DNA of 63,435 nucleotides, filler included, from Pelomyxa schiedti (lineage: Eukaryota; Protista; Evosea): NCBI GenBank assembly GCA_020536535.1. It is 14 parts of 14 records of this genome, joined end to end, with 100 filler letters (N's around TTAATTAATTAA, not from the genome) between each part and the next. Parts side by side here need not be neighbours in the genome. Positions count along the whole stretch, not along the records: positions 1 to 9,623 come from JAHLWZ010000696.1; 13 more parts are not named here. One strand, 5' to 3'. The translations under genes and the position numbers were made by a program. The notes beneath the pieces were generated by a model. The model searched no databases and was not told where the DNA came from. It worked only from the letters and a program-made list of their open reading frames with translations. How positions within the stretch are numbered: position 1 is the first letter of the stretch; each line of letters opens with the position of its first letter. Positions 1 to 9,623 of this stretch are shown piece by piece.

Positions 1-145
1 GGGGCAGGCTCCACGTGGAGTTTGACACGGAGACTAGCAAGTCGTTGGATTTCGACTTGGAGGCCCCCAGGAGAGACTTGTCCTGGGGCTCGGGGGACCC
101 GCTGGGCGTCGTGGCCGAGTTGGTGGTTGTCGCGGCAGTTGTCAT
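1..145 (-). CDS. 5' fragment of a membrane-anchored phosphodiesterase paralog (copy 0)
   Basis: Bases 1-490 are nearly identical to 1430-1930. The ATG at 145 (MTTAATTT) matches the copy A start at 1574. Confidence 0.7.
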   Translation of the reverse strand, partial: MTTAATTTNSATTPSGSPEPQDKSLLGASKSKSNDLLVSVSNSTWSLP

Positions 146-470
146 TCTCACCCGAGCAACCAATCGATCCTTGCCAACAAAGGCTAGTTTATTTTTTTGA
201 TATCCAGGACCTGTCTTGTTGGTCAGTGGAATCCTCAAAGTACACAAAATGTGTTTTTCAACGGCTGTCAATAGATCATTTCGTCAAAGTCAGGTACACG
301 TCCCCTAAACTGACCGGGCAATTTCGACCGATTTGGAAAACTCCAAAAGCGCCACTATCTATCGCGAATCTTCCGGTGTTCGCGTGGTTGCTATTCCCAC
401 ACGCCATTACTGTATGTACAGTTGGTTACTGATTGCTGTTGTCTTTGAGGTGTGTTGTTGGCATCCTCTC

Positions 471-1574
471 TCAGTGTTTTGGTGATGGGGATTGAGAGGG
501 GCTCCGCTTGTTTGCTGGATGTTGATTGTGGTTCTTATGTTGCTGATGTGGTGGTTCAGGAGTGAGAGAAGGTGAAGGAACTGGTGGCATGCTGCCGGGA
601 AGGATCTGACCAGAGGGAGAGAGGTGGTGGAGCTGGTTGGAGCTCCAGTATTCGTTGTTGGACTTGATGCACTGAATCATGAGGGGAGTGGGGCACGCGG
701 CGCTGAACGTGGTCAGAAGCGGCTCCGNNNNNNNNNNNNNNNNNNNNNNNNNNNNNNNNNNNNNNNNNNNNNNNNNNNNNNNNNNNNNNNNNNNNNNNNN
801 NNNNNNNNNNNNNNNNNNNNNNNNNNNTCCACAATTCTGTCGCGCTATCATCTCCAAAGAAGTTTGGATTAAACGTCAGGGCCAAATCAAAGAAGTCGAG
901 TTGTCTGAACAGAACCTATTCCTTAACTTTAGCTCTCGAGGGGAGTACAGACCCCGGAGGGAGAAGTCGTACGTTAACAGTTTCGTGGATTTCGCTGAAG
1001 ATAACTTTTGATGGCAACACAAAGTTAGCCCAAACAACGACACGAGGTAATAAATGTCCAGTAATAACACACAAGTCAAACAAAAATGAACATAAACAAC
1101 AACAACAACAATAATAAAAGCCAAAGGGGATGGGCAAGTTGCACACGCACTGTCCGAAGTGCTGCTCATGGTGTCATCAGCCATCAGCGAGACCACGTTG
1201 GACGACGAAGTGTACCACACAAGCCACACCGAAACCGCGGTCGCGACGACGAGGCCGACCGACACGAGCACCGACCGCAGCACGCCCTTGTCCGTCGCCC
1301 GCGCCACCGCCTTGGCCATCTTGCGCGGCTTCCTCCCCAGCCTGCCTCCCCACCATGTTTTCGCTGCGGCGGCGCCTGTTGGCTGGCTTGACCCGCGCTC
1401 GCAGATGGTGGCCGACTGCGGGCGCCCAGGGGGCAGGCTCCACGTGGAGTTTGACACGGAGACTAGCAAGTCGTTGGATTTCGACTTGGAGGCCCCCAGG
1501 AGAGACTTGTCCTGGGGCTCGGGGGACCCGCTGGGCGTCGTGGCCGAGTTTGTGGTTGTCGCGGCAGTTGTCAT
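471..1574 (-). CDS. Membrane-anchored class I cyclic nucleotide phosphodiesterase, copy A (middle lost in the gap)
   Basis: First exon has TM1 VLRSVLVSVGLVVATAVSVWLVWY. Last exon EPLLTTFSAACPTPLMIQCIKSNNEYW matches copies B and C. The gap at 728-827 hides the core. Confidence 0.75.
728..827. other. 100-N scaffold gap (others: 8846-8945, 13945-14044, 45189-45288)
   Basis: Plain 100-N runs. At 13945 and 45189 about 120 bp left of the gap is repeated verbatim right of it, typical of unmerged contig overlaps. Confidence 0.93.
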
Positions 1575-1911
1575 CCTCTCACTTGAGCAACCAATCGATC
1601 CTTGCCAACAATGGCTAGTTTATTTTTTTGATATCCAGGACCTGTCTTGTTGGTCAGTGGAATCCTCAAAGTACACAAAAAGTGCTTTTCAACGGAGTCA
1701 AGAGATCATTTCGCCAAAGTCTGGTACGCGTACCTTAAACTGACGGGCAATTTCGACCGATTTGGAAAACTCCAAAAGCGCCACGATCTATCACGAAAAA
1801 ACGAATCTTCCGGTGTTCGCGTAGTTGCTATTCCCACACGCTATTACTGTATGTACAGTTGGTTACTGATTGCTGTTGTCTTTGAGGTGTGTTGTTGGCA
1901 TCCACACTCTC

Positions 1912-4900
1912 TCAGTGTTTCGATGATGGGGATTGAGAGGGGCTCTGTTTGTTTGCTGGATGTTGATTGTGGTTCTTATGTTGCTGATGTGGTGGTGGTT
2001 CAGGAGTGAGAGAAGGTGAGGGAACTGGTGGAATGCTGCCGGGAAGGATTTGACCAGAGGGAGAGAGGTGGTGGAGCTGGTTGGAGCTCCAGTATTCGTT
2101 GTTTGACTTGATGCACTCAATCATGAGGGGAGTGGGGCACGCGGCGCTGAACGTGGTCAGAAGCGGCTCCGCGATGATGTTGATGAAGTTGGTTTGCAGC
2201 TTGGACAGCTTCGTGACTCCCTCTGTTCCAAGAAGTTAACACACACATCAAAAAAAAAGGGAGAAGTGAAGAAACCGGAACGGTCTGTGAATGGGCTCAC
2301 TGGAACACCCAATGCCTTTTCCTGATCACCTTGGTTGTAAAACTCTTGTGTGAGTTGTGACACCCAATACATCATTGGCTTGTGGGGTCGCATTACCTAA
2401 CCAAACAATCCCTTATTTTCGCAAGTAGTATGGACTGCTTACATTTGAAATATCGGCTGTTTTGATTGCAACACACAGGAGTTGTGTTCTGTGTTCTTTG
2501 TTTTGCATCATGTCCCGCTTTGGGTCTTCCAAAATTGTCTGTGGAAAGAAAGGAGGAGTCAGGAGGTACTACAGGTTCAAAAAGAAAATCACCTTGAATT
2601 TTGAGATAATCTCAAAGTGTTGTGCCATATCCGTGGCCAGAACCAAGTTGATGATCAATGAACGCACTGTGCGGAGTTGTGAACAACAGTGAAATATGAA
2701 AGGGTTGGGTGTCTCACAGTATTTCTTGTCATTTGGTGACAAATTCCACTCCGCGGTGACTCGCGATGACATGATTTTCAATCCCAAGCTTGAATGAAAG
2801 TTTTCGAGAACACTGCGATCTGTGAGGGTTGGGGCTCAGAATTAAAACAACGGATTGAATTCAGAACCATTGTATCGGAGGGCGAGATCGTTTTCAGTTG
2901 CAATCAGGAATGCCTGATTCAATTTTCAGAGAAAAATTGAAGCGGGGAAAGGAGAGAGAGACAGAAACGCACATTGTTGACACCAGGGTGGCCAACATCG
3001 TGAATGATTCCAGAAACAATGAGGCCAAACATGTCCAAATAATTCGTGGGCCCAATAATTTCTCTGAGCCCGTTGACCAAGAAGTAATAAAGGCATTGAA
3101 CAACATCCGCTGCGTGTATTCTGTTGTGATACGAATTTGCCTGTCGGGTTTGAGTGTTACGAAAATAAGATTGAGTAACAACCTGATAAAGCTGTTCCAC
3201 TTCATGAACGAAGAAGCGAAAAGACTCAACGGGAATGGCAAGAGCTTGAAGCAACTCCAAGGATGATACAACTTGCATTGCCACACGCTCGAGAATGCCC
3301 TCGGGTGGGATTTCAAAGATCTATGCGATTATTCAGAAGGTTTTTAAGGGGAAAAAGGGAAATTACACAAAAATCCAGAGATTTCAACTCCAAAATGTCA
3401 CTGCTGTCTGACACAACAGAAACCAGTGGTGCCGCAACATTGGAAGGAGTATCAGGAGCTAGCTTGCTTGGTGCAATCTCTTCATTGAGCCTGATTTTAT
3501 CATTTAAAGAGTCAGATCACGTGTGGAACTAGGACAGGCACCACACCATTTCTGGATATCGGTGTCCAACAAACAGGTTTGTTTCTTCAAATCAGGCATG
3601 AAGAGGCCACCAGTCTGTGTGAGATTCGAGATGATTTCGTCAATGATCTTGGTTGTTCTTTTCGACGAGTGACTTTTGAGCAAATGCAACTTGTCAAGAA
3701 CCTGAATTTGAAACGAATAATGAGATCTCCCACCCCAAGGAGGATTGCTTGTTTGTTTGATTTGTTGCCAACAACCTTAGTGATTCCAGCATCCAAGTCA
3801 ATTTTTGGTTCTGGTGACACAGAATTTCTTTTCTTGCTCAACGAAATGGCAGAAAAAACTCTTTGCACTCAGTTAACAACAGTGCAGTTGGTTTCTGTTT
3901 TGGAAGCGGCATACCCAACAACGAGAAGAACTGCAACCAATGCACATGTGATGATGACAGAAAACCTCGTGCTCAATCGAGATGATTCAGTGTATTTCCT
4001 GTTTGTATCAGAGATGTAAAGAAGTGACAAAAGGACTTGGAGATTACGTTGATGACAGAGAAATAACCACCAGCCATTGAACACTGGGGTGAGGGTGGTA
4101 ATGGAACACTTAATTTCGTGTCAGAAGAAGAGAAAAGAGGGACATGTCGCAGATTACCTTCTCTGTGAAATCGTTGTTAGTTTGGTCCTGGGGTAATGGA
4201 AGAGAATACAGGAAATAACTGTCATCTTCGTCAGAAAACTGCATTTTGCACGTTTCATTCTCTGAAATGCTTCCGATTTTGTCTTGAAGGAGCCCCCATG
4301 TGTGAACCACTTTGGTGCTCGATGAGTTGTCTGGAGTGACCGTTCTACCAAGCAATGTCTCAGATTGTTAAAAAGGGAAAGACATAATACCCAAGTTCAC
4401 TTGTTCCCACACTAAGAGAGCCAAGAACAGCCAGGAGTTTTCCATGAGAATCCACAATGTATGAAAAGCTGTTTGTTCCCATGTCAATCCCAGAAAGCAG
4501 TGTGGTTAACTTTATAAGAGGGTTAGGAAAGATTAAGCACTTTTTATCTATATACCATTGGCACCTCCATTCCTGCGTAAAGCCATGCAATTTTTGTTTC
4601 ACCACTGTATAGGACCTGAGTGAGATGGTTAATAACAAAAAGAACAAGGTAATAACTCACTTTTTGCACACTGATTATGAACATTTCATAACCCCTGGAA
4701 TTTTTTTGATCAGTAAAACACGTGGTAAAAAGGAAGTGGAGTACAAGAAATCAATGTAAACTGGGTCAAAATATACAATTTCTTTTCCAGTCACTGACTG
4801 AAGAAGTATTGGACAATTTAACATTGCATCAATGCAAGCCATTGGAATAAACACAGGGGCTGCAGAAGAGACCTGACCCATACATGCCTGGCCCATTGAT

Positions 4901-5936
4901 TTGTTTCCATCTTTGACCGTTACAAAGAGGGAATCTGTAGTATTTTCAACTTTGTAAACTGAAGTGAAGACCTTTTTTACATTTTGAGTGTTACTTTACC
5001 ACACATGCACATACAATATCCAGAGATGAGAGGAGAGAGGGACCAACAAGAGAGTTAAAAGTATATGGATCAGTTGGAGCAAGCATCATTGCAAATTGAG
5101 ACTTTTCCTGTGATAGATAAATAATGGCGGAACAAAGGGAAAAAAATAAGAGGAATTAAAACATTTAATAGCGAAGCTGCTTGAATGGACCACATTTCTG
5201 TCGCCTTGTCATCACCAAAGAAATTGGGATTAAAAGACATGGCCAAATCAAAGAACTCTATCTGTCGGAAGAGGACCTATTCATCAGTCACTGTGGGGAA
5301 TTGAGCGGAAAAAGACTCATACATGAACGGTCTGGTGGATTTCACTGAATATAACTGTTAACAACAAAGTTAGGTTATTAGAGAGCCAGAGGGGAGGGAA
5401 AAATTGATCTTTCACAAAAAAATGAGTTGTATTACCCATATTTGTGAAATAAACTAATGTGTAAAACCAAAAAGGTAATTAAGGCGGAACATAATGCCCG
5501 GGAATTAATCAAACGCCAACGCACTGTTCGACGTGTCACTCATGGTGTCATCAGCCATCAGCGAGACGACCTTCGTCGACGTCGTGTACCACACAAGCCA
5601 CACCGAAACCGCGGTCGCGACGACGAGGCCGACCGACACGAGCACCGACCGCAGCACGCCCTTGTCCGTCGCCCGCGCCACCGCCTTGAGCATCTTGCGC
5701 GGCTTCCTCGCCAGTCTGCCTCCTCCCCCACACCATGTTTTGGACGTGCTGCTGCGCGCGGCTGGCGCAGTGCGCGGTACCAGGGCCGCCGCGGAGCTCG
5801 AGGCCGAGAAGACGTTTACTCCTGACTCGACCTGGGACTCGCCGGATCCGAGCAGGTGTTTCTGGTGTGGTGCAGATCCGATGATGGTGGTGTTTCGTGG
5901 TTCTGGGAGAGTTGTTGCAACTGCAGCAGTTGACAT
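1912..5936 (-). CDS. TM-dCache-like-TM-PDEase_I receptor-type phosphodiesterase, copy B (complete span, multi-exon)
   Basis: PDE motifs: YHNRIHAADV, HDVGHPGVNN, YN-DRSVLENFH, LVLATDMAQHF, IKTADISN, EFYNQGDQEKALG, KLQTNFINIIAEPL. TM1 is in the 5505-5936 exon and TM2 is FSVIITCALVAVLLVVGYAAS (about 3880-3960). The segment between them contains LTTLLSGIDMGTNSFSYIVDSHGKLLA. The ORF-track start at 5999 is GTG; the ATG equivalent to copy A is at 5936. Confidence 0.88.
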
Positions 5937-6261
5937 GGCGATCCAAACGGATCCTAGTGCGAGGCTTGTTTGTTTGTTTTTTGGTTGTCCCTTAGCCACC
6001 TGTAGCTTTCAAAGCCACGCAAGGGAAAGGAGTTGTACCTGTCCCACAAATTAGGCAGTGGGATCTTCCAAGAAAGAAAACCGCGGTTCCGACCTTCCTT
6101 TCTTCAATCTTAGCCTAAGATCGATGTAGTGTAGTTCAACGCAGTATCTTTAGTGCAACAGGTGCATATTCACATGGTTATTGTAACACGGTGTTATTGT
6201 TGGTATGTGAGCTTGTACAGTAGTGTGGGTGCGTGTTGAGGTGTGTTGTTGGCACCCTCTC

Positions 6262-8845
6262 TCAGTGTTTTGATGATGGGGATTGAGAGGGGCTGCGGTT
6301 TTGTGTTGGCTGTTGGTTGTTATGGGGTTGTTGTTTTTGCAATGATTCATAAGTTAGTGAAGGTGAGGGAACTGGTGGAATGCTGCCGGGAAGGATTTGA
6401 CCAGAGGGAGAGAGGTGGTGGAGCTGGTTGGAGCTCCAGTATTCGTTGTTGGACTTGATGCACTGAACCATGAGGGGAGTGGGGCACGCAGCACTGAACG
6501 TGGTCAGAAGCGGCTCCGCGATGATGTTGATGAAGTTGGTTTGCAGCTTGGACAGCTTCGTGACTCCCTCTGTTTTGAGAGTGAGAATATGCACACATTG
6601 TAGAAAGGAAGTGAAGAAACCGGAACGGTCTGTGAATGGGCTCACTGGAACACCCAATGCCTTTTCCTGGTCACCTTGGTTGTAAAACTCTTGTGTGAGT
6701 TGTGACACCCAATGCATCATTTGCTTGTGCGGTCGCATGACCTAGAGAGCAAAGGAATATTAGCAATAGAAATTAGAACGTATTGCTTACATTTGAAATG
6801 TCGGCTGTTTTGATTGCAACACACAGGAGTTGTGTTCTGTGTTCTTTGTTTTGCATCATGTCCCTCTTTGGATTTTCCAAAATTGTCTGCGGAAAAAGCG
6901 TCAGAATAACTAGAGGGTAACAAAAAGAAATCCTTGAATACCTTGAATTTTGAGATAATCTCAAAGTGTTGTGCCATATCCGTGGCCAGAACCAAGTTGA
7001 TGATCAATGAACGCACTGTGTGGGAGTTGTTAACAACAACAGATGAGAATGGTTGGGTGCGTTACAATATTTCTTGTCATTTGGTGAAAAGTTCCACTCC
7101 GCGGTGACTCGCGATGACATGATTTTCAACCCCAAGCTCGAGTGAAGATTTTCGAGAACACTGCGATCTGTGATGGTTGGGGGTAACAATTAAAAAAGCA
7201 GATGGGACTGTGGGAACCATTGTATCGGAGGGCGAGATCGTTTTCAGTTGCAATCAGAAACGCCTGGTTCGAAAATGAGTGACATAAAATTCAGAAGGGA
7301 GATACACATACATTGTTGACACCAGGGTGCCCAACATCGTGAATGATCCCAGAAACGATGAGGCCAAACATGTCCAAATAATTCGTGGGCCCAATAATTT
7401 CTCTGAGCCCGTTGACCAAGAAGTAATAAAGGCATTGAACAACATCCGCTGCGTGTATTCTGTTGTGATACGAATTTGCCTGTCGGGTTTGAGTTATTGG
7501 CGCCAACAGTGAATTAGTTACAACCTTATATAACCGCTCTATTTCACAAACGAAGGTTCGGAAAGATTCAAAGGGAATGGCAAGAGCTTGAAGCAACTCC
7601 AAGGATGATACAACTTGCATTGCCACACGCTCGAGAATGCCCTCGGGTGGGATTTCAAAGATCTGGGGGGGATTGTTCAGAAGGTTTTTAAGGGGAAGAA
7701 GGGAAAATTACACAAAAATCCAGAGAGTTCAACTCAAAAGTGTCATTGCTGTATGACACGACAGAAACCAGTGGTGCCGCAACATTGGAAGGAGTATCAG
7801 GAGCTAGCTTGCTTGGTGCAATCTCTTCATTGAGCCTGATTTTATCATTTAAAGAGTCAGATCACATCCTTTTCTGTTGGTTGCGCAGCTTGGAAGGACA
7901 ACACACACCATTTCTGGATATCGGTGTCCAACAAACAGGTTTGTTTCTTCAAGTCCGGCATGAAGAGGCCACCAGTCTGTGTGAGATTCGAGATGATTTC
8001 GTCAAGGATTTTGGTTGTTCTTTTCGATGAATGCCTTTTGAGGAAATGCAGTTTGTCAAGCACCTGTTTTGAACCAAAATGAGATCTCAAGCTTAATTGA
8101 TTGCTTATTGAGAATAACCTTGGTGATTCCAGCATCCAAGTCAATTTTTGGTTCTGGTGACACAGAATCTCTTTTCTTGCTCAACGAAATGGCAGAAACC
8201 ACTCTTCACGCGCAGTTAAGGAACAGAGGGATGGGTTTTTGAAAGGGACAGTGAACACACCCAACAATGAGAAGAACTGCAACCAATGCACATGTGATGA
8301 TGATGGAGAACCTCGTGCTAACACGGGATGATTCAGTGTACTTGCTGGTTACACATCAGAGATAAAAACAAGTTACAAAAGGAAGCAGAGCTTACGTTGA
8401 TGACAGAGAAATAACCACCAACCATTGGGCACTGGGATGAGGGTGGTAACGGAACACTGAATTTCGTGTCAAAACAAGAGAAATGAAAAGAAGATGCATC
8501 GCAGATTACCTTCTCTGTGGAATGTGGTTGGTGAGATTATTCTTGGGCAATGTTGGGGAGAGAGAGAGATAGATATAGATCATACAGGAAATAACTGTCC
8601 GTCTCGTCGGAATACTGCATTTTGCACGTTTCATTTTCTGAAATACTTCCGATTTTATCTTGAAGGAGCCCCCATGTGTGAACCACTTTGGTGCTTGATG
8701 AGTTTTCTGGAGTTAACGTTCTGACACTTGTCAGATGTAAAAAGGGGAGGTGGAAACCGTCACACACCCAAATTCAGTTGATTCAACAGTCAAAGAGCCA
8801 AGAACAGCCAGAAGTTTACCATGAGAATCCACAATGTATGAAAAG
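6262..8845 (-). CDS. Receptor-type phosphodiesterase, copy C (5' part lost at the gap)
   Basis: Same exon series as copy B: YHNRIHAADV and HDVGHPGVNN at 7291-7500, LATDMAQHF, QGDQEKALG, and SYIVDSHGKLLAVLGS next to the gap. Confidence 0.85.
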
Positions 8846-8945
8846 NNNNNNNNNNNNNNNNNNNNNNNNNNNNNNNNNNNNNNNNNNNNNNNNNNNNNNN
8901 NNNNNNNNNNNNNNNNNNNNNNNNNNNNNNNNNNNNNNNNNNNNN

Positions 8946-9623
8946 TCATGAACGAAGAAGCGAAAAGACTCAACGGGAATGGCAAGAGCTTGAAGCAACT
9001 CCAAGGATGATACAACTTGCATTGCCACACGCTCGAGAATGCCCTCGGGTGGGATTTCAAAGATCTGTGTGATTATTCAGAAGGTTTTTAAGGGGAAAAA
9101 GGGAAAATTACACAAAAATCCAGAGATTTCAACTCCAAAATGTCACTGCTGTCTGACACAACAGAAACCAGCGGCACCACAACGTTGGAAGGTGAATCGG
9201 GAGTCAAATTAATGATCTTGCTTGGTGCAATTTCTTCATTGAGCCTTATTTTATAATTTGAGAGTAAGATCACGTGTGGAACTAGGACAGGCACCACACC
9301 ATTTCTGGATATCGGTGTCCAACAAACAGGTTTGTTTCTTCAAATCAGGCATGAAGAGGCCACCAGTCTGTGTGAGGTTCGAGATGATTTCGTCAATGAT
9401 CTTGGTTGTTCTTTTCGACGAGTGACTTTTGAGCAAATGCAACTTGTCAAGAACCTGAATTTGAAACGAAAAATGAGATCTCCCACCCCAAGGAGGATTG
9501 CTTTGTTTGTTTGATTTGTTGCCAACAACCTTAGTGATTCCAGCATCCAAGTCAATTTTTGGTTCTGGTGACACAGAATTTCTTTTCTTGCTCAACGAAA
9601 TGGCAGAAAAAACTCTTTGCACT
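8946..9623 (-). CDS. Receptor-type phosphodiesterase, copy D (internal fragment)
   Basis: Near-identical to 3205-3870 of copy B (EPKIDLDAGITKVV, KRTTKIIDEIISNL, SLELLQALAIPVESF). Cut by a gap and a linker. Confidence 0.75.

Follow-up and report, generated by a model that had tools for sequence, protein, structure and literature searches.

A tandem array of candidate two-pass receptor phosphodiesterases with a double-Cache-like ectodomain in the amoeba Pelomyxa schiedti

To our knowledge, receptor control of cyclic nucleotides is known almost wholly on the side of synthesis, through receptor cyclases and G protein-coupled receptors acting on cyclases. The locus described here concerns the side of degradation, where the one established receptor enzyme is light-gated. 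It is the entire contig JAHLWZ010000696.1 (9,623 bp) of Pelomyxa schiedti, an anaerobic free-living amoeba of the Archamoebae, and occupies positions 1 to 9,623 of the window, that is, of the whole 63,435-nt stretch of DNA, filler included. The contig holds a head-to-tail array of genes whose one complete member, copy B, encodes a protein with two transmembrane (TM) segments and a class I phosphodiesterase (PDE) domain. We hold with moderate confidence that this is a tandem array of expressed and selected two-pass receptors, in which a dCache sensor outside the cell would regulate, through a linker and in response to a ligand, a class I PDE in the cytosol.

The array and its complete gene

The coding sequence of the contig lies on the minus strand throughout, and comparison of the contig with itself by BLASTN (self-BLASTN) revealed a tandem repeat unit of about 4.35 kb. 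An earlier note on this DNA (hereafter, the original prediction) had claimed at least five head-to-tail copies, and self-BLASTN upheld it: at least five units (Z, A, B, D and E) are represented, of which B alone is complete. The copy B model was built from the splice rules of RNA contigs (single-cell RNA libraries, aligned to 1850-6050) and from the alignment of copies B and D, which separates conserved, indel-free exons from diverged introns with indels. All its introns are GT..AG and 42-59 nt long, with the exception of the first (170 nt). The features of copy B are as follows.

1912-5936, minus strand: copy B, complete coding sequence, 23 exons, 931 amino acids, no internal stop
5936-5525, 5354-5323, 5276-5163, 5107-5015, 4971-4745, 4694-4661, 4615-4556, 4509-4391, minus strand: exons 1-8 (high to low)
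4344-4210, 4162-4158, 4108-4048, 3998-3915, 3860-3776, 3701-3547, 3490-3367, 3320-3183, minus strand: exons 9-16
3140-2973, 2913-2868, 2819-2718, 2666-2593, 2538-2443, 2396-2276, 2222-1912, minus strand: exons 17-23
5592-5648, minus strand: TM1, residues 97-115, SVLVSVGLVVATAVSVWLV, after a K/R-rich N-terminal tail; Kyte-Doolittle 19-residue mean 2.33
3965-5591, minus strand: ectodomain span, introns included, residues 116-442, putative double-Cache-like sensor
4158-4162, minus strand: 5-nt microexon AGAAG inside the proximal Cache module, encoding the middle of an L-E-V segment
3839-3964, minus strand: TM2, residues 443-466, FSVIITCALVAVLLVVG and VFSAISL, split by a 54-nt intron (3861-3914); Kyte-Doolittle 2.92
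3367-3838, minus strand: predicted cytosolic linker, about 115-130 residues, motif KIDLDAGITKV...LFMPDLK.Q..LLD.DIQKWL
2068-3320, minus strand: class I PDE catalytic domain, exons 16-23, residues ~581-880
1912-2067, minus strand: C-terminal tail, low-complexity and P/Q/H/S-rich in translation, with the stop

The protein thus reads, from its N-terminus, as a cytosolic tail, TM1, an ectodomain of 327 amino acids, TM2, a conserved and presumably helical linker and a class I PDE domain, and the layout of the original prediction (TM, dCache-like ectodomain, TM, class I PDE) was recovered in one gene. Two deposited proteins map to the contig, KAH3759290.1 (P0002) and KAH3759291.1 (P0001). P0002 is an exact suffix of the copy B model from residue 193; it starts at an internal Met (MMLAPTDPY) and lacks exons 1-3 and the start of exon 4 (5015-5936), 192 residues that include the N-terminal tail, TM1 and the Cache stalk helix. 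The full copy B model matched a family ectodomain profile at E 4.9e-144 over positions 4-377, compared with 102-377 for P0002 alone, and since the added part matches a profile derived from paralogues, the N-terminal extension is supported. P0001 (654 amino acids) crosses the second assembly gap (8846-8945, in the region 8731-9060) and joins the linker and PDE start of copy E to the ectodomain of copy D; because it fuses two copies across a gap, it is a chimeric artefact. With P0002 truncated and P0001 chimeric, both P. schiedti entries need correction.

Eight copy B junctions were confirmed outright by RNA contigs, and two more were recovered from unaligned contig ends. These spliced contigs cover the linker; they connect its exons with the TM2 exon, and the PDE exons with each other. 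They differ from B at few positions, and one has HFLKR codons as in copy D; their source is therefore sister copies, and the family is expressed and spliced in the way modelled. Copies B and D are maintained by purifying selection, since the ratio of nonsynonymous to synonymous substitution rates (dN/dS) between them comes to 0.25 overall. The PDE domain has the lowest value, 0.17, followed by the proximal Cache module (0.22) and the linker (0.24), and the C-terminal tail evolves fastest, at 0.64.

The 5-nt microexon is needed for the reading frame of copy B and is also used in the deposited model P0002. It is kept in copy D (8510-8514), its AG/GT flanks intact amid otherwise diverged intron sequence; the introns beside it in the two copies are 47-71 nt long, and paralogues read LNV, IEV or LEV at this position. 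Two alternative readings of the gene were discarded. A 76-nt intron between exons 4 and 5 gave way to the 43-nt one (GTATGT..AAAAAG) of the deposited model, and an intron-free reading between the 'DFTEK' stretch and TM2 was rejected on account of frame-breaking indels and a stop in copy D.

Catalytic domain, membrane segments, ectodomain and family

The catalytic domain of copy B (searched as P0002) matched PDEase_I (PF00233) with 241.9 bits against a cutoff of 24.8 (E 9.9e-72), and its paralogues scored 212-245 bits. Alignment with human PDE4D (169.8 bits) spanned the entire catalytic domain, with YHNRIHAADV, HDVGHPG, SVLENFH, LATDMAQH, TADISN and the Gln of LQTNFIN conserved. Copy B keeps all the metal ligands and the invariant Gln, as the original prediction had stated, together with the catalytic His, and the same columns are invariant in all seven family members aligned. 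Judging by these intact residues, the PDE domain should be catalytically competent. The best matches in the PDB were PDE4D (170 bits), PDE3A (165 bits) and PDE9A (148 bits), a ranking too flat to tell cyclic AMP (cAMP) from cyclic GMP (cGMP) as the substrate.

The two strong hydrophobic segments of copy B (residues 97-115 and 443-461) had been predicted to flank about 300 codons, and 327 lie between them. Two TM helices were likewise found in all full-length paralogues, where, as in copy B, they flank the Cache-like domain. Copy B starts not with a signal peptide but with a hydrophilic, K/R-rich stretch of about 95 residues ahead of TM1, and TM2 is followed by a basic patch (SKKR); K and R are enriched on the predicted cytosolic flanks. 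The inter-TM region contains N-glycosylation sequons. In its distal module, Cys residues 247 and 263 (~4885-4835) are conserved in nine of 11 members and lost jointly in the other two (P0003 and P0161); because both are kept or lost together, they likely form a disulfide in the distal Cache module. As dCache and other Cache domains are extracytoplasmic sensors (PMC4822843), and given the charge bias without a signal peptide, the sequons and the co-varying Cys pair, we strongly infer that the sensor lies outside the cell and the PDE domain in the cytosol.

Both motifs quoted in the original prediction were found inside the inter-TM interval of copy B, LTTLLSGIDMGTNSFSYIVDSHGKLLA in exon 8 and YFDPVYID in exon 5. 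Scans with Pfam dCache_1 (PF02743) gave sub-threshold matches in seven Pelomyxa paralogues, recurring at about 117-184 of the 240 profile positions and extending beyond them in P0006 and in the Mastigamoeba balamuthi protein P0169. The E-values were 1.4e-5 for P0009, 9.7e-5 for P0004, 5.4e-4 for P0169, 0.0087 for P0151, 0.091 for P0162, 0.12 for P0006, 0.17 for copy B and 0.2 for P0160; in single-exon Pfam scans, dCache_1 did no better than E 0.22. One Pelomyxa paralogue carries a precomputed PF02743 and PF00233 annotation. The family profile found one match among PDB sequences, the dCache domain of Campylobacter jejuni Tlp3 (E 0.5), over a PxYxD core that corresponds to the YFDPVYID motif of copy B (PVYID against PAYLD in Tlp3). 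A search of the ESM Atlas with a 62-residue ectodomain exon returned no match. In homology searches among proteins, the P0004 ectodomain recovered itself alone and the family ectodomain profile recovered none, an outcome of the word prefilter and length window that does not argue for absence. Taken by itself, the sequence is no more than suggestive of a Cache domain.

The structure makes a strong case for a dCache fold, as predicted for a paralogue. The AlphaFold2 model of P0004:58-430 (TM1, ectodomain and TM2), computed from a six-sequence alignment, had a mean predicted local distance difference test score (pLDDT) of 80.4 and a predicted template-modelling score of 0.74, and in it a long N-terminal helix is followed by a membrane-distal and a membrane-proximal PAS-like alpha/beta module. 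In a Foldseek search of the PDB, the 50 best matches comprised nothing but dCache ligand-binding domains of bacteria and chemoreceptor models with such a domain (best E 3.8e-9), among them PctD, TlpQ, TlpC, McpU, PctA/C, Mlp24 and mmHK1S-Z3. VIA-align gave a top Z of 19.4 over 271 of 316 PctD residues at 3.6 A, and Z was at least 14.4 in all 50 listed, with most of each target covered. The dCache_1 representatives of the ESM Atlas superposed on all 373 residues of the model, with template-modelling scores of 0.78-0.84 and root-mean-square deviations of 2.6-3.5 A. A CHASE domain (PF03924) gave no match at E up to 1 in the 12 members scanned, and there were no CHASE-domain receptor structures among the top structural matches of the P0004 model. 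Because copy B is 32% identical to P0004 in the ectodomain region and matches the family profile so well, the predicted fold would extend to copy B. The Cache assignment that the original prediction had drawn from a motif was therefore carried by structure prediction and fold search in P0004, whereas Pfam dCache_1 stayed below its threshold.

Between TM2 and the PDE domain, the linker has many invariant columns across the family, and it matched no Pfam family and no PDB entry. Its profile also matches multi-TM PDEs of other eukaryotes that have no sensor (P0040, P0097, P0180 and P0264). From these alignments, it seems to represent an unnamed linker family common to membrane-anchored protist PDEs, and because the linker alone also occurs in multi-TM PDEs, the sensor seems to have been grafted onto an older membrane-anchored PDE lineage. 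Five proteins of this kind (P0040, P0097, P0154, P0180 and P0264, from environmental eukaryotes, M. balamuthi and a EukProt transcript) have a multi-TM N-terminus without Cache, and a juxtamembrane motif, (D/M)(L/M)D(S/A)(P/G)(L/I)(T/E)K(V/A), and the pre-catalytic linker are common to those multi-TM PDEs.

A search with the catalytic domain of P0004 returned a P. schiedti group at 323-648 bits and 53-100% identity, after which the scores dropped to generic PDEs at 190 bits or less. The genome-wide count of paralogues proposed with the original prediction came to at least 12 annotated members, each of them with ectodomain and linker. Ten further paralogues are placed on other P. schiedti contigs, and with the array copies included the genome holds about 15 genes of this kind at the least. 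Mean pairwise identity among 11 members was 29.7% in the ectodomain, 41.7% in TM2 and the linker, and 58.2% in the PDE domain, and this faster divergence of the ectodomain fits the idea, already put forward in the original prediction, that ligand specificity is diverging among the copies.

Outside P. schiedti, an environmental eukaryote contig of 562 kb and 40% G+C (European Nucleotide Archive ERZ21831265, ctg81958l; L001:3774-7117) carries a homologue whose ectodomain exons, TM2, linker and PDE are colinear. M. balamuthi P0169 (m51a1_g627, 933 amino acids) has TM segments at 13-31 and 364-382 with about 330 residues between them and PDEase_I at 545-763; the inter-TM region holds the sub-threshold dCache_1 match given above, and the protein aligned to the Pelomyxa profile in hhalign at E 2.8e-4. 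It probably has the Cache-PDE architecture, and on this ground the architecture is probably common to Archamoebae. A second Mastigamoeba candidate, P0015, which has two PDE domains, was rejected for having no Cache domain.

Proposed mechanism, known systems and competing readings

By analogy with bacterial dCache receptors, a ligand bound in the Cache pocket would displace the helix running into TM2, and the linker would relay this shift to the PDE domains, probably in a dimer, so that hydrolysis of cAMP or cGMP would be raised or lowered. Fast-diverging ectodomains on a conserved enzyme might then amount to a chemoreceptor panel acting by removal of a second messenger. We suggest only tentatively, at somewhat less than an even chance, that these are the first chemoreceptor-type PDEs, in which an extracellular small molecule directly switches a class I PDE in the cytosol without an intervening G protein or kinase, and that Archamoebae hold a panel of at least 15 with differing ligands. 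If true, degradation in place of synthesis would here be the step of cyclic-nucleotide signalling under receptor control, eukaryotes would be seen to put degradation, too, under direct chemical control from outside the cell, and the output range of the largest bacterial family of extracellular sensors would gain a typically eukaryotic enzyme. A compact, chemically switchable PDE could also serve as a research tool. The idea lends itself to a direct test: the ectodomains appear to be modules of a type for which ligand screens are routine in bacteria.

The family shares with bacterial dCache_1 TM sensors (PctA, PctD, TlpQ and Tlp3, histidine kinases, GGDEF/EAL enzymes and class III cyclases) the order of TM1, stalk helix, distal and proximal PAS-like modules and TM2, as well as the PxYxD and F.Y.vD..G.l.A cores. 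In contrast to them, it is eukaryotic and intron-rich, has a class I (HD-type) PDE as its output and no HAMP, scores below the Pfam cutoff and lacks the amino-acid-binding motif. In surveys of Cache proteins, the outputs named are EAL and HD phosphodiesterases, cyclases, kinases and chemoreceptors, and PDEase_I is not among them (PMC4822843; PMC8915833). All the eukaryotic dCache_1 proteins found in one survey are reported to carry a VWA insertion, unlike the P. schiedti family, which has none (PMC8915833). Receptor-type cyclases of protists with a TM-dCache-TM arrangement (Bodo saltans and Naegleria; PMC4822843) have the same sensor module, but their output is a cyclase and not a PDE; with this opposite enzymology, they are the mirror image to which the original prediction referred.

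The only established signal-gated receptor PDE is the light-gated rhodopsin phosphodiesterase (Rh-PDE) of choanoflagellates (PMC7644710). Like the Pelomyxa proteins, it is a membrane receptor that a linker, of 76 residues in Rh-PDE, connects with a class I PDE in the cytosol; its sensor, however, is a rhodopsin responding to light, whereas the Pelomyxa sensor would be a two-TM extracellular Cache domain responding presumably to a chemical signal. No rhodopsin was matched by Pfam in the Pelomyxa family, whose members have two TM segments only and not the multiple segments of a rhodopsin. The nearest neighbour in the ESM Atlas (score 0.90, 191 shared features) is a green-algal cluster with CHASE and PDEase_I (1216 amino acids, 151 members, Chlorophyta), which also pairs an extracellular sensor with a class I PDE in a eukaryote. 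By annotation, the basis of this comparison, CHASE is present in 17% of its members while it was undetected in Pelomyxa, and the lineage is another; the algal proteins are possibly an independent sensor-PDE fusion. Entries A0A250WRB4 and A0A835SSF1 of the AlphaFold Database are green-algal, and no paper describing the algal CHASE-PDE proteins was found.

Two uncharacterised entries of the same database, A0A1J4JWW8 (911 amino acids) and A0A1J4JFV3 (804 amino acids), whose accessions point to Tritrichomonas foetus, can be aligned by structure with almost the whole of P0004 and rank above every PDE-only match. We consider them possible further receptors of a Cache-PDE-like type.

On this subject, the paper on the Mastigamoeba genome notes no more than that cyclases and PDEs are expanded (PMC8136499). 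In full-text searches of the literature, no description of a Cache-PDE architecture was found, either in general or in Pelomyxa and Mastigamoeba. The Cache-PDE family is real, expressed and expanded, and it is apparently undescribed and unstudied. The wider claim of an 'undescribed signalling system' in the original prediction was nevertheless overstated, given Rh-PDE (PMC7644710), the green-algal CHASE and PDEase_I proteins, and the paralogue already annotated with PF02743 and PF00233.

Several results weigh against ligand-regulated receptors. The coupling step is the weakest link of the mechanism because no known transducer was detected, with neither HAMP nor any other transducer module appearing between TM2 and the PDE domain in any Pfam scan, and because the full-length AlphaFold2 model of P0004 (mean pLDDT 64.6) is unreliable in the linker, most of which scores 25-47; an attempt to read the coupling mechanism from this model was dropped for that reason. 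Ligand gating of the PDE is itself something that we infer. No member reached the Pfam dCache_1 gathering cutoff of 45 bits, the scores being 11.6-25.2, and the fold evidence comes from a structure predicted for a paralogue with 32% ectodomain identity to copy B, not for copy B. The dCache_1AA motif (Y121, R126, W128 ... Y144 ... D173 in PctA numbering, with 13-17 residues between parts; PMC8915833) is absent, as judged from sequence alignments and not from structural superposition. Copy B keeps its P-x-Y-x-D only and has no R-x-W; the Trp column holds Cys in copy B and Trp in eight of 11 paralogues, the position near D173 is Glu or variable, and the expected pocket residues vary among paralogues. 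A variable pocket that lacks this motif fits diverse ligands, although it is not proof of them. Finally, the splicing of copy B, to be read from RNA according to the original prediction, was recovered for the TM2-linker-PDE junctions through contigs of sister copies and not for the TM1 and ectodomain exons of the locus, which no RNA contig covers, so that the joining of exons 1-3 to the rest rests on frame, splice sites and homology with paralogues.

Some of these points are shared by the main rival, a constitutive membrane-anchored PDE whose Cache-like ectodomain would serve dimerisation, localisation or adhesion, or persist as a degenerate relic, without allosteric control. The plain multi-TM PDEs found with the linker profile (P0040, P0097, P0180 and P0264) indicate that anchoring alone is common in this PDE lineage, no transducer module was recognised, and the pocket residues are poorly conserved. 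Yet the ectodomain is under purifying selection (dN/dS 0.22), the full two-module fold is kept in at least 12 paralogues, the linker adjoining TM2 is among the best-conserved parts, as expected of a transducer, and bacteria use the same module as a sensor (PMC4822843). We regard a purely constitutive enzyme as unlikely, though deserving serious weight. Far less probable is an inverted topology, with the Cache-like region in the cytosol and the PDE outside the cell or in a lumen, where it would degrade extracellular cyclic nucleotide. Its precedent, which also tells against a cytosolic enzyme in P. schiedti, is Dictyostelium PDE4, the only membrane class I PDE studied in an amoebozoan, which like the Pelomyxa proteins has two TM segments (PMC11988041). 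From its description, on which the comparison rests, Dictyostelium PDE4 differs in that the model gives it a signal peptide and places its catalytic domain outside the cell, with no mention of a sensor (PMC11988041). The Pelomyxa protein has some 95 hydrophilic, K/R-rich residues ahead of TM1 in place of a signal peptide, its inter-TM region has the co-varying Cys pair and the sequons, dCache domains are extracytoplasmic (PMC4822843), and no Dictyostelium PDE occurs among the named proteins of the 120 closest catalytic domains, many of which are nameless entries.

That the array is an artefact of single-cell assembly or amplification, or a set of decaying pseudogenes, is scarcely credible, even though the data come from single-cell libraries, two assembly gaps interrupt the array, and one deposited gene model is chimeric and another truncated. 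The copies differ by 4-16% in the manner of genes, with exon lengths and splice sites kept and indels in the introns, and the dN/dS of 0.25 has been given above. Moreover, two P. schiedti DNA runs cover copy B in unspliced form, spliced transcripts are present, and the ten other paralogues lie on separate contigs.

Other copies and the assembly gaps

Along the minus strand, the contig reads as the copy E fragment (9623-8946), a gap, copy D (8845-6262), copy B (5936-1912), copy A (1574-828), a gap, a last-exon part (727-471) and copy Z (145-1). The self-BLASTN matches from which the units were recognised were 1-727 with 1430-2171 (94%), 1882-4468 with 6236-8845 (84%), 3202-3869 with 8946-9623 (96%) and 445-727 with 6236-6518 (88%), and further 829-921 with 5190-5282 and 1145-1355 with 5519-5730. 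The features outside copy B are as follows.

8946-9623, minus strand: copy E, fragment of 678 bp running from part of exon 13 into part of exon 16, with the linker and the first stretch of the PDE domain; 96% identity with B 3202-3869
8846-8945, no strand: assembly gap 2, 100 N; flanks at unit positions ~4468 and ~3202; hides at least ~3.1 kb
6262-8845, minus strand: copy D, partial, from within exon 8 (FSYIVDSHGKLLA) to the stop; 5' third lost in the gap; 84% identical to B
828-1574, minus strand: copy A, N-terminal part, with ATG at 1574, TM1 and small exons, ended by the gap; BLASTN to B 5519-5730 and 5190-5282
728-827, no strand: assembly gap 1, 100 N; flanks at unit positions ~2171 and ~5190; hides at least ~3.0 kb
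471-727, minus strand: last-exon part (end of the PDE domain, tail and stop), open reading frame 471-857; belongs to copy A or to another copy inside the gap
1-145, minus strand: copy Z, first 48 codons, ATG at 145, ended by the contig end; near-identical to copy A

The flanks of either gap do not adjoin in the repeat unit, so each run of 100 N stands for at least 3.0-3.1 kb of collapsed repeat, to which multiples of 4.35 kb may be added. Across neither gap does the sequence continue or the reading frame hold; behind gap 2 lie the last part of copy E, a spacer between genes and the beginning of copy D. In copy D, none of the 15 complete exons has changed in length or lost its GT/AG sites, and the reading frame is unbroken. 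Copy A translates as MTTAATTTNS...VLRSVLVSVGLVVATAVSVWLVWYT and copy Z as MTTAATTTNSATTPSG.... The C-terminal tails (1912-2067 in copy B and 6262-6420 in copy D) differ between the copies by small in-frame indels, and small deletions were also observed there in one RNA contig.

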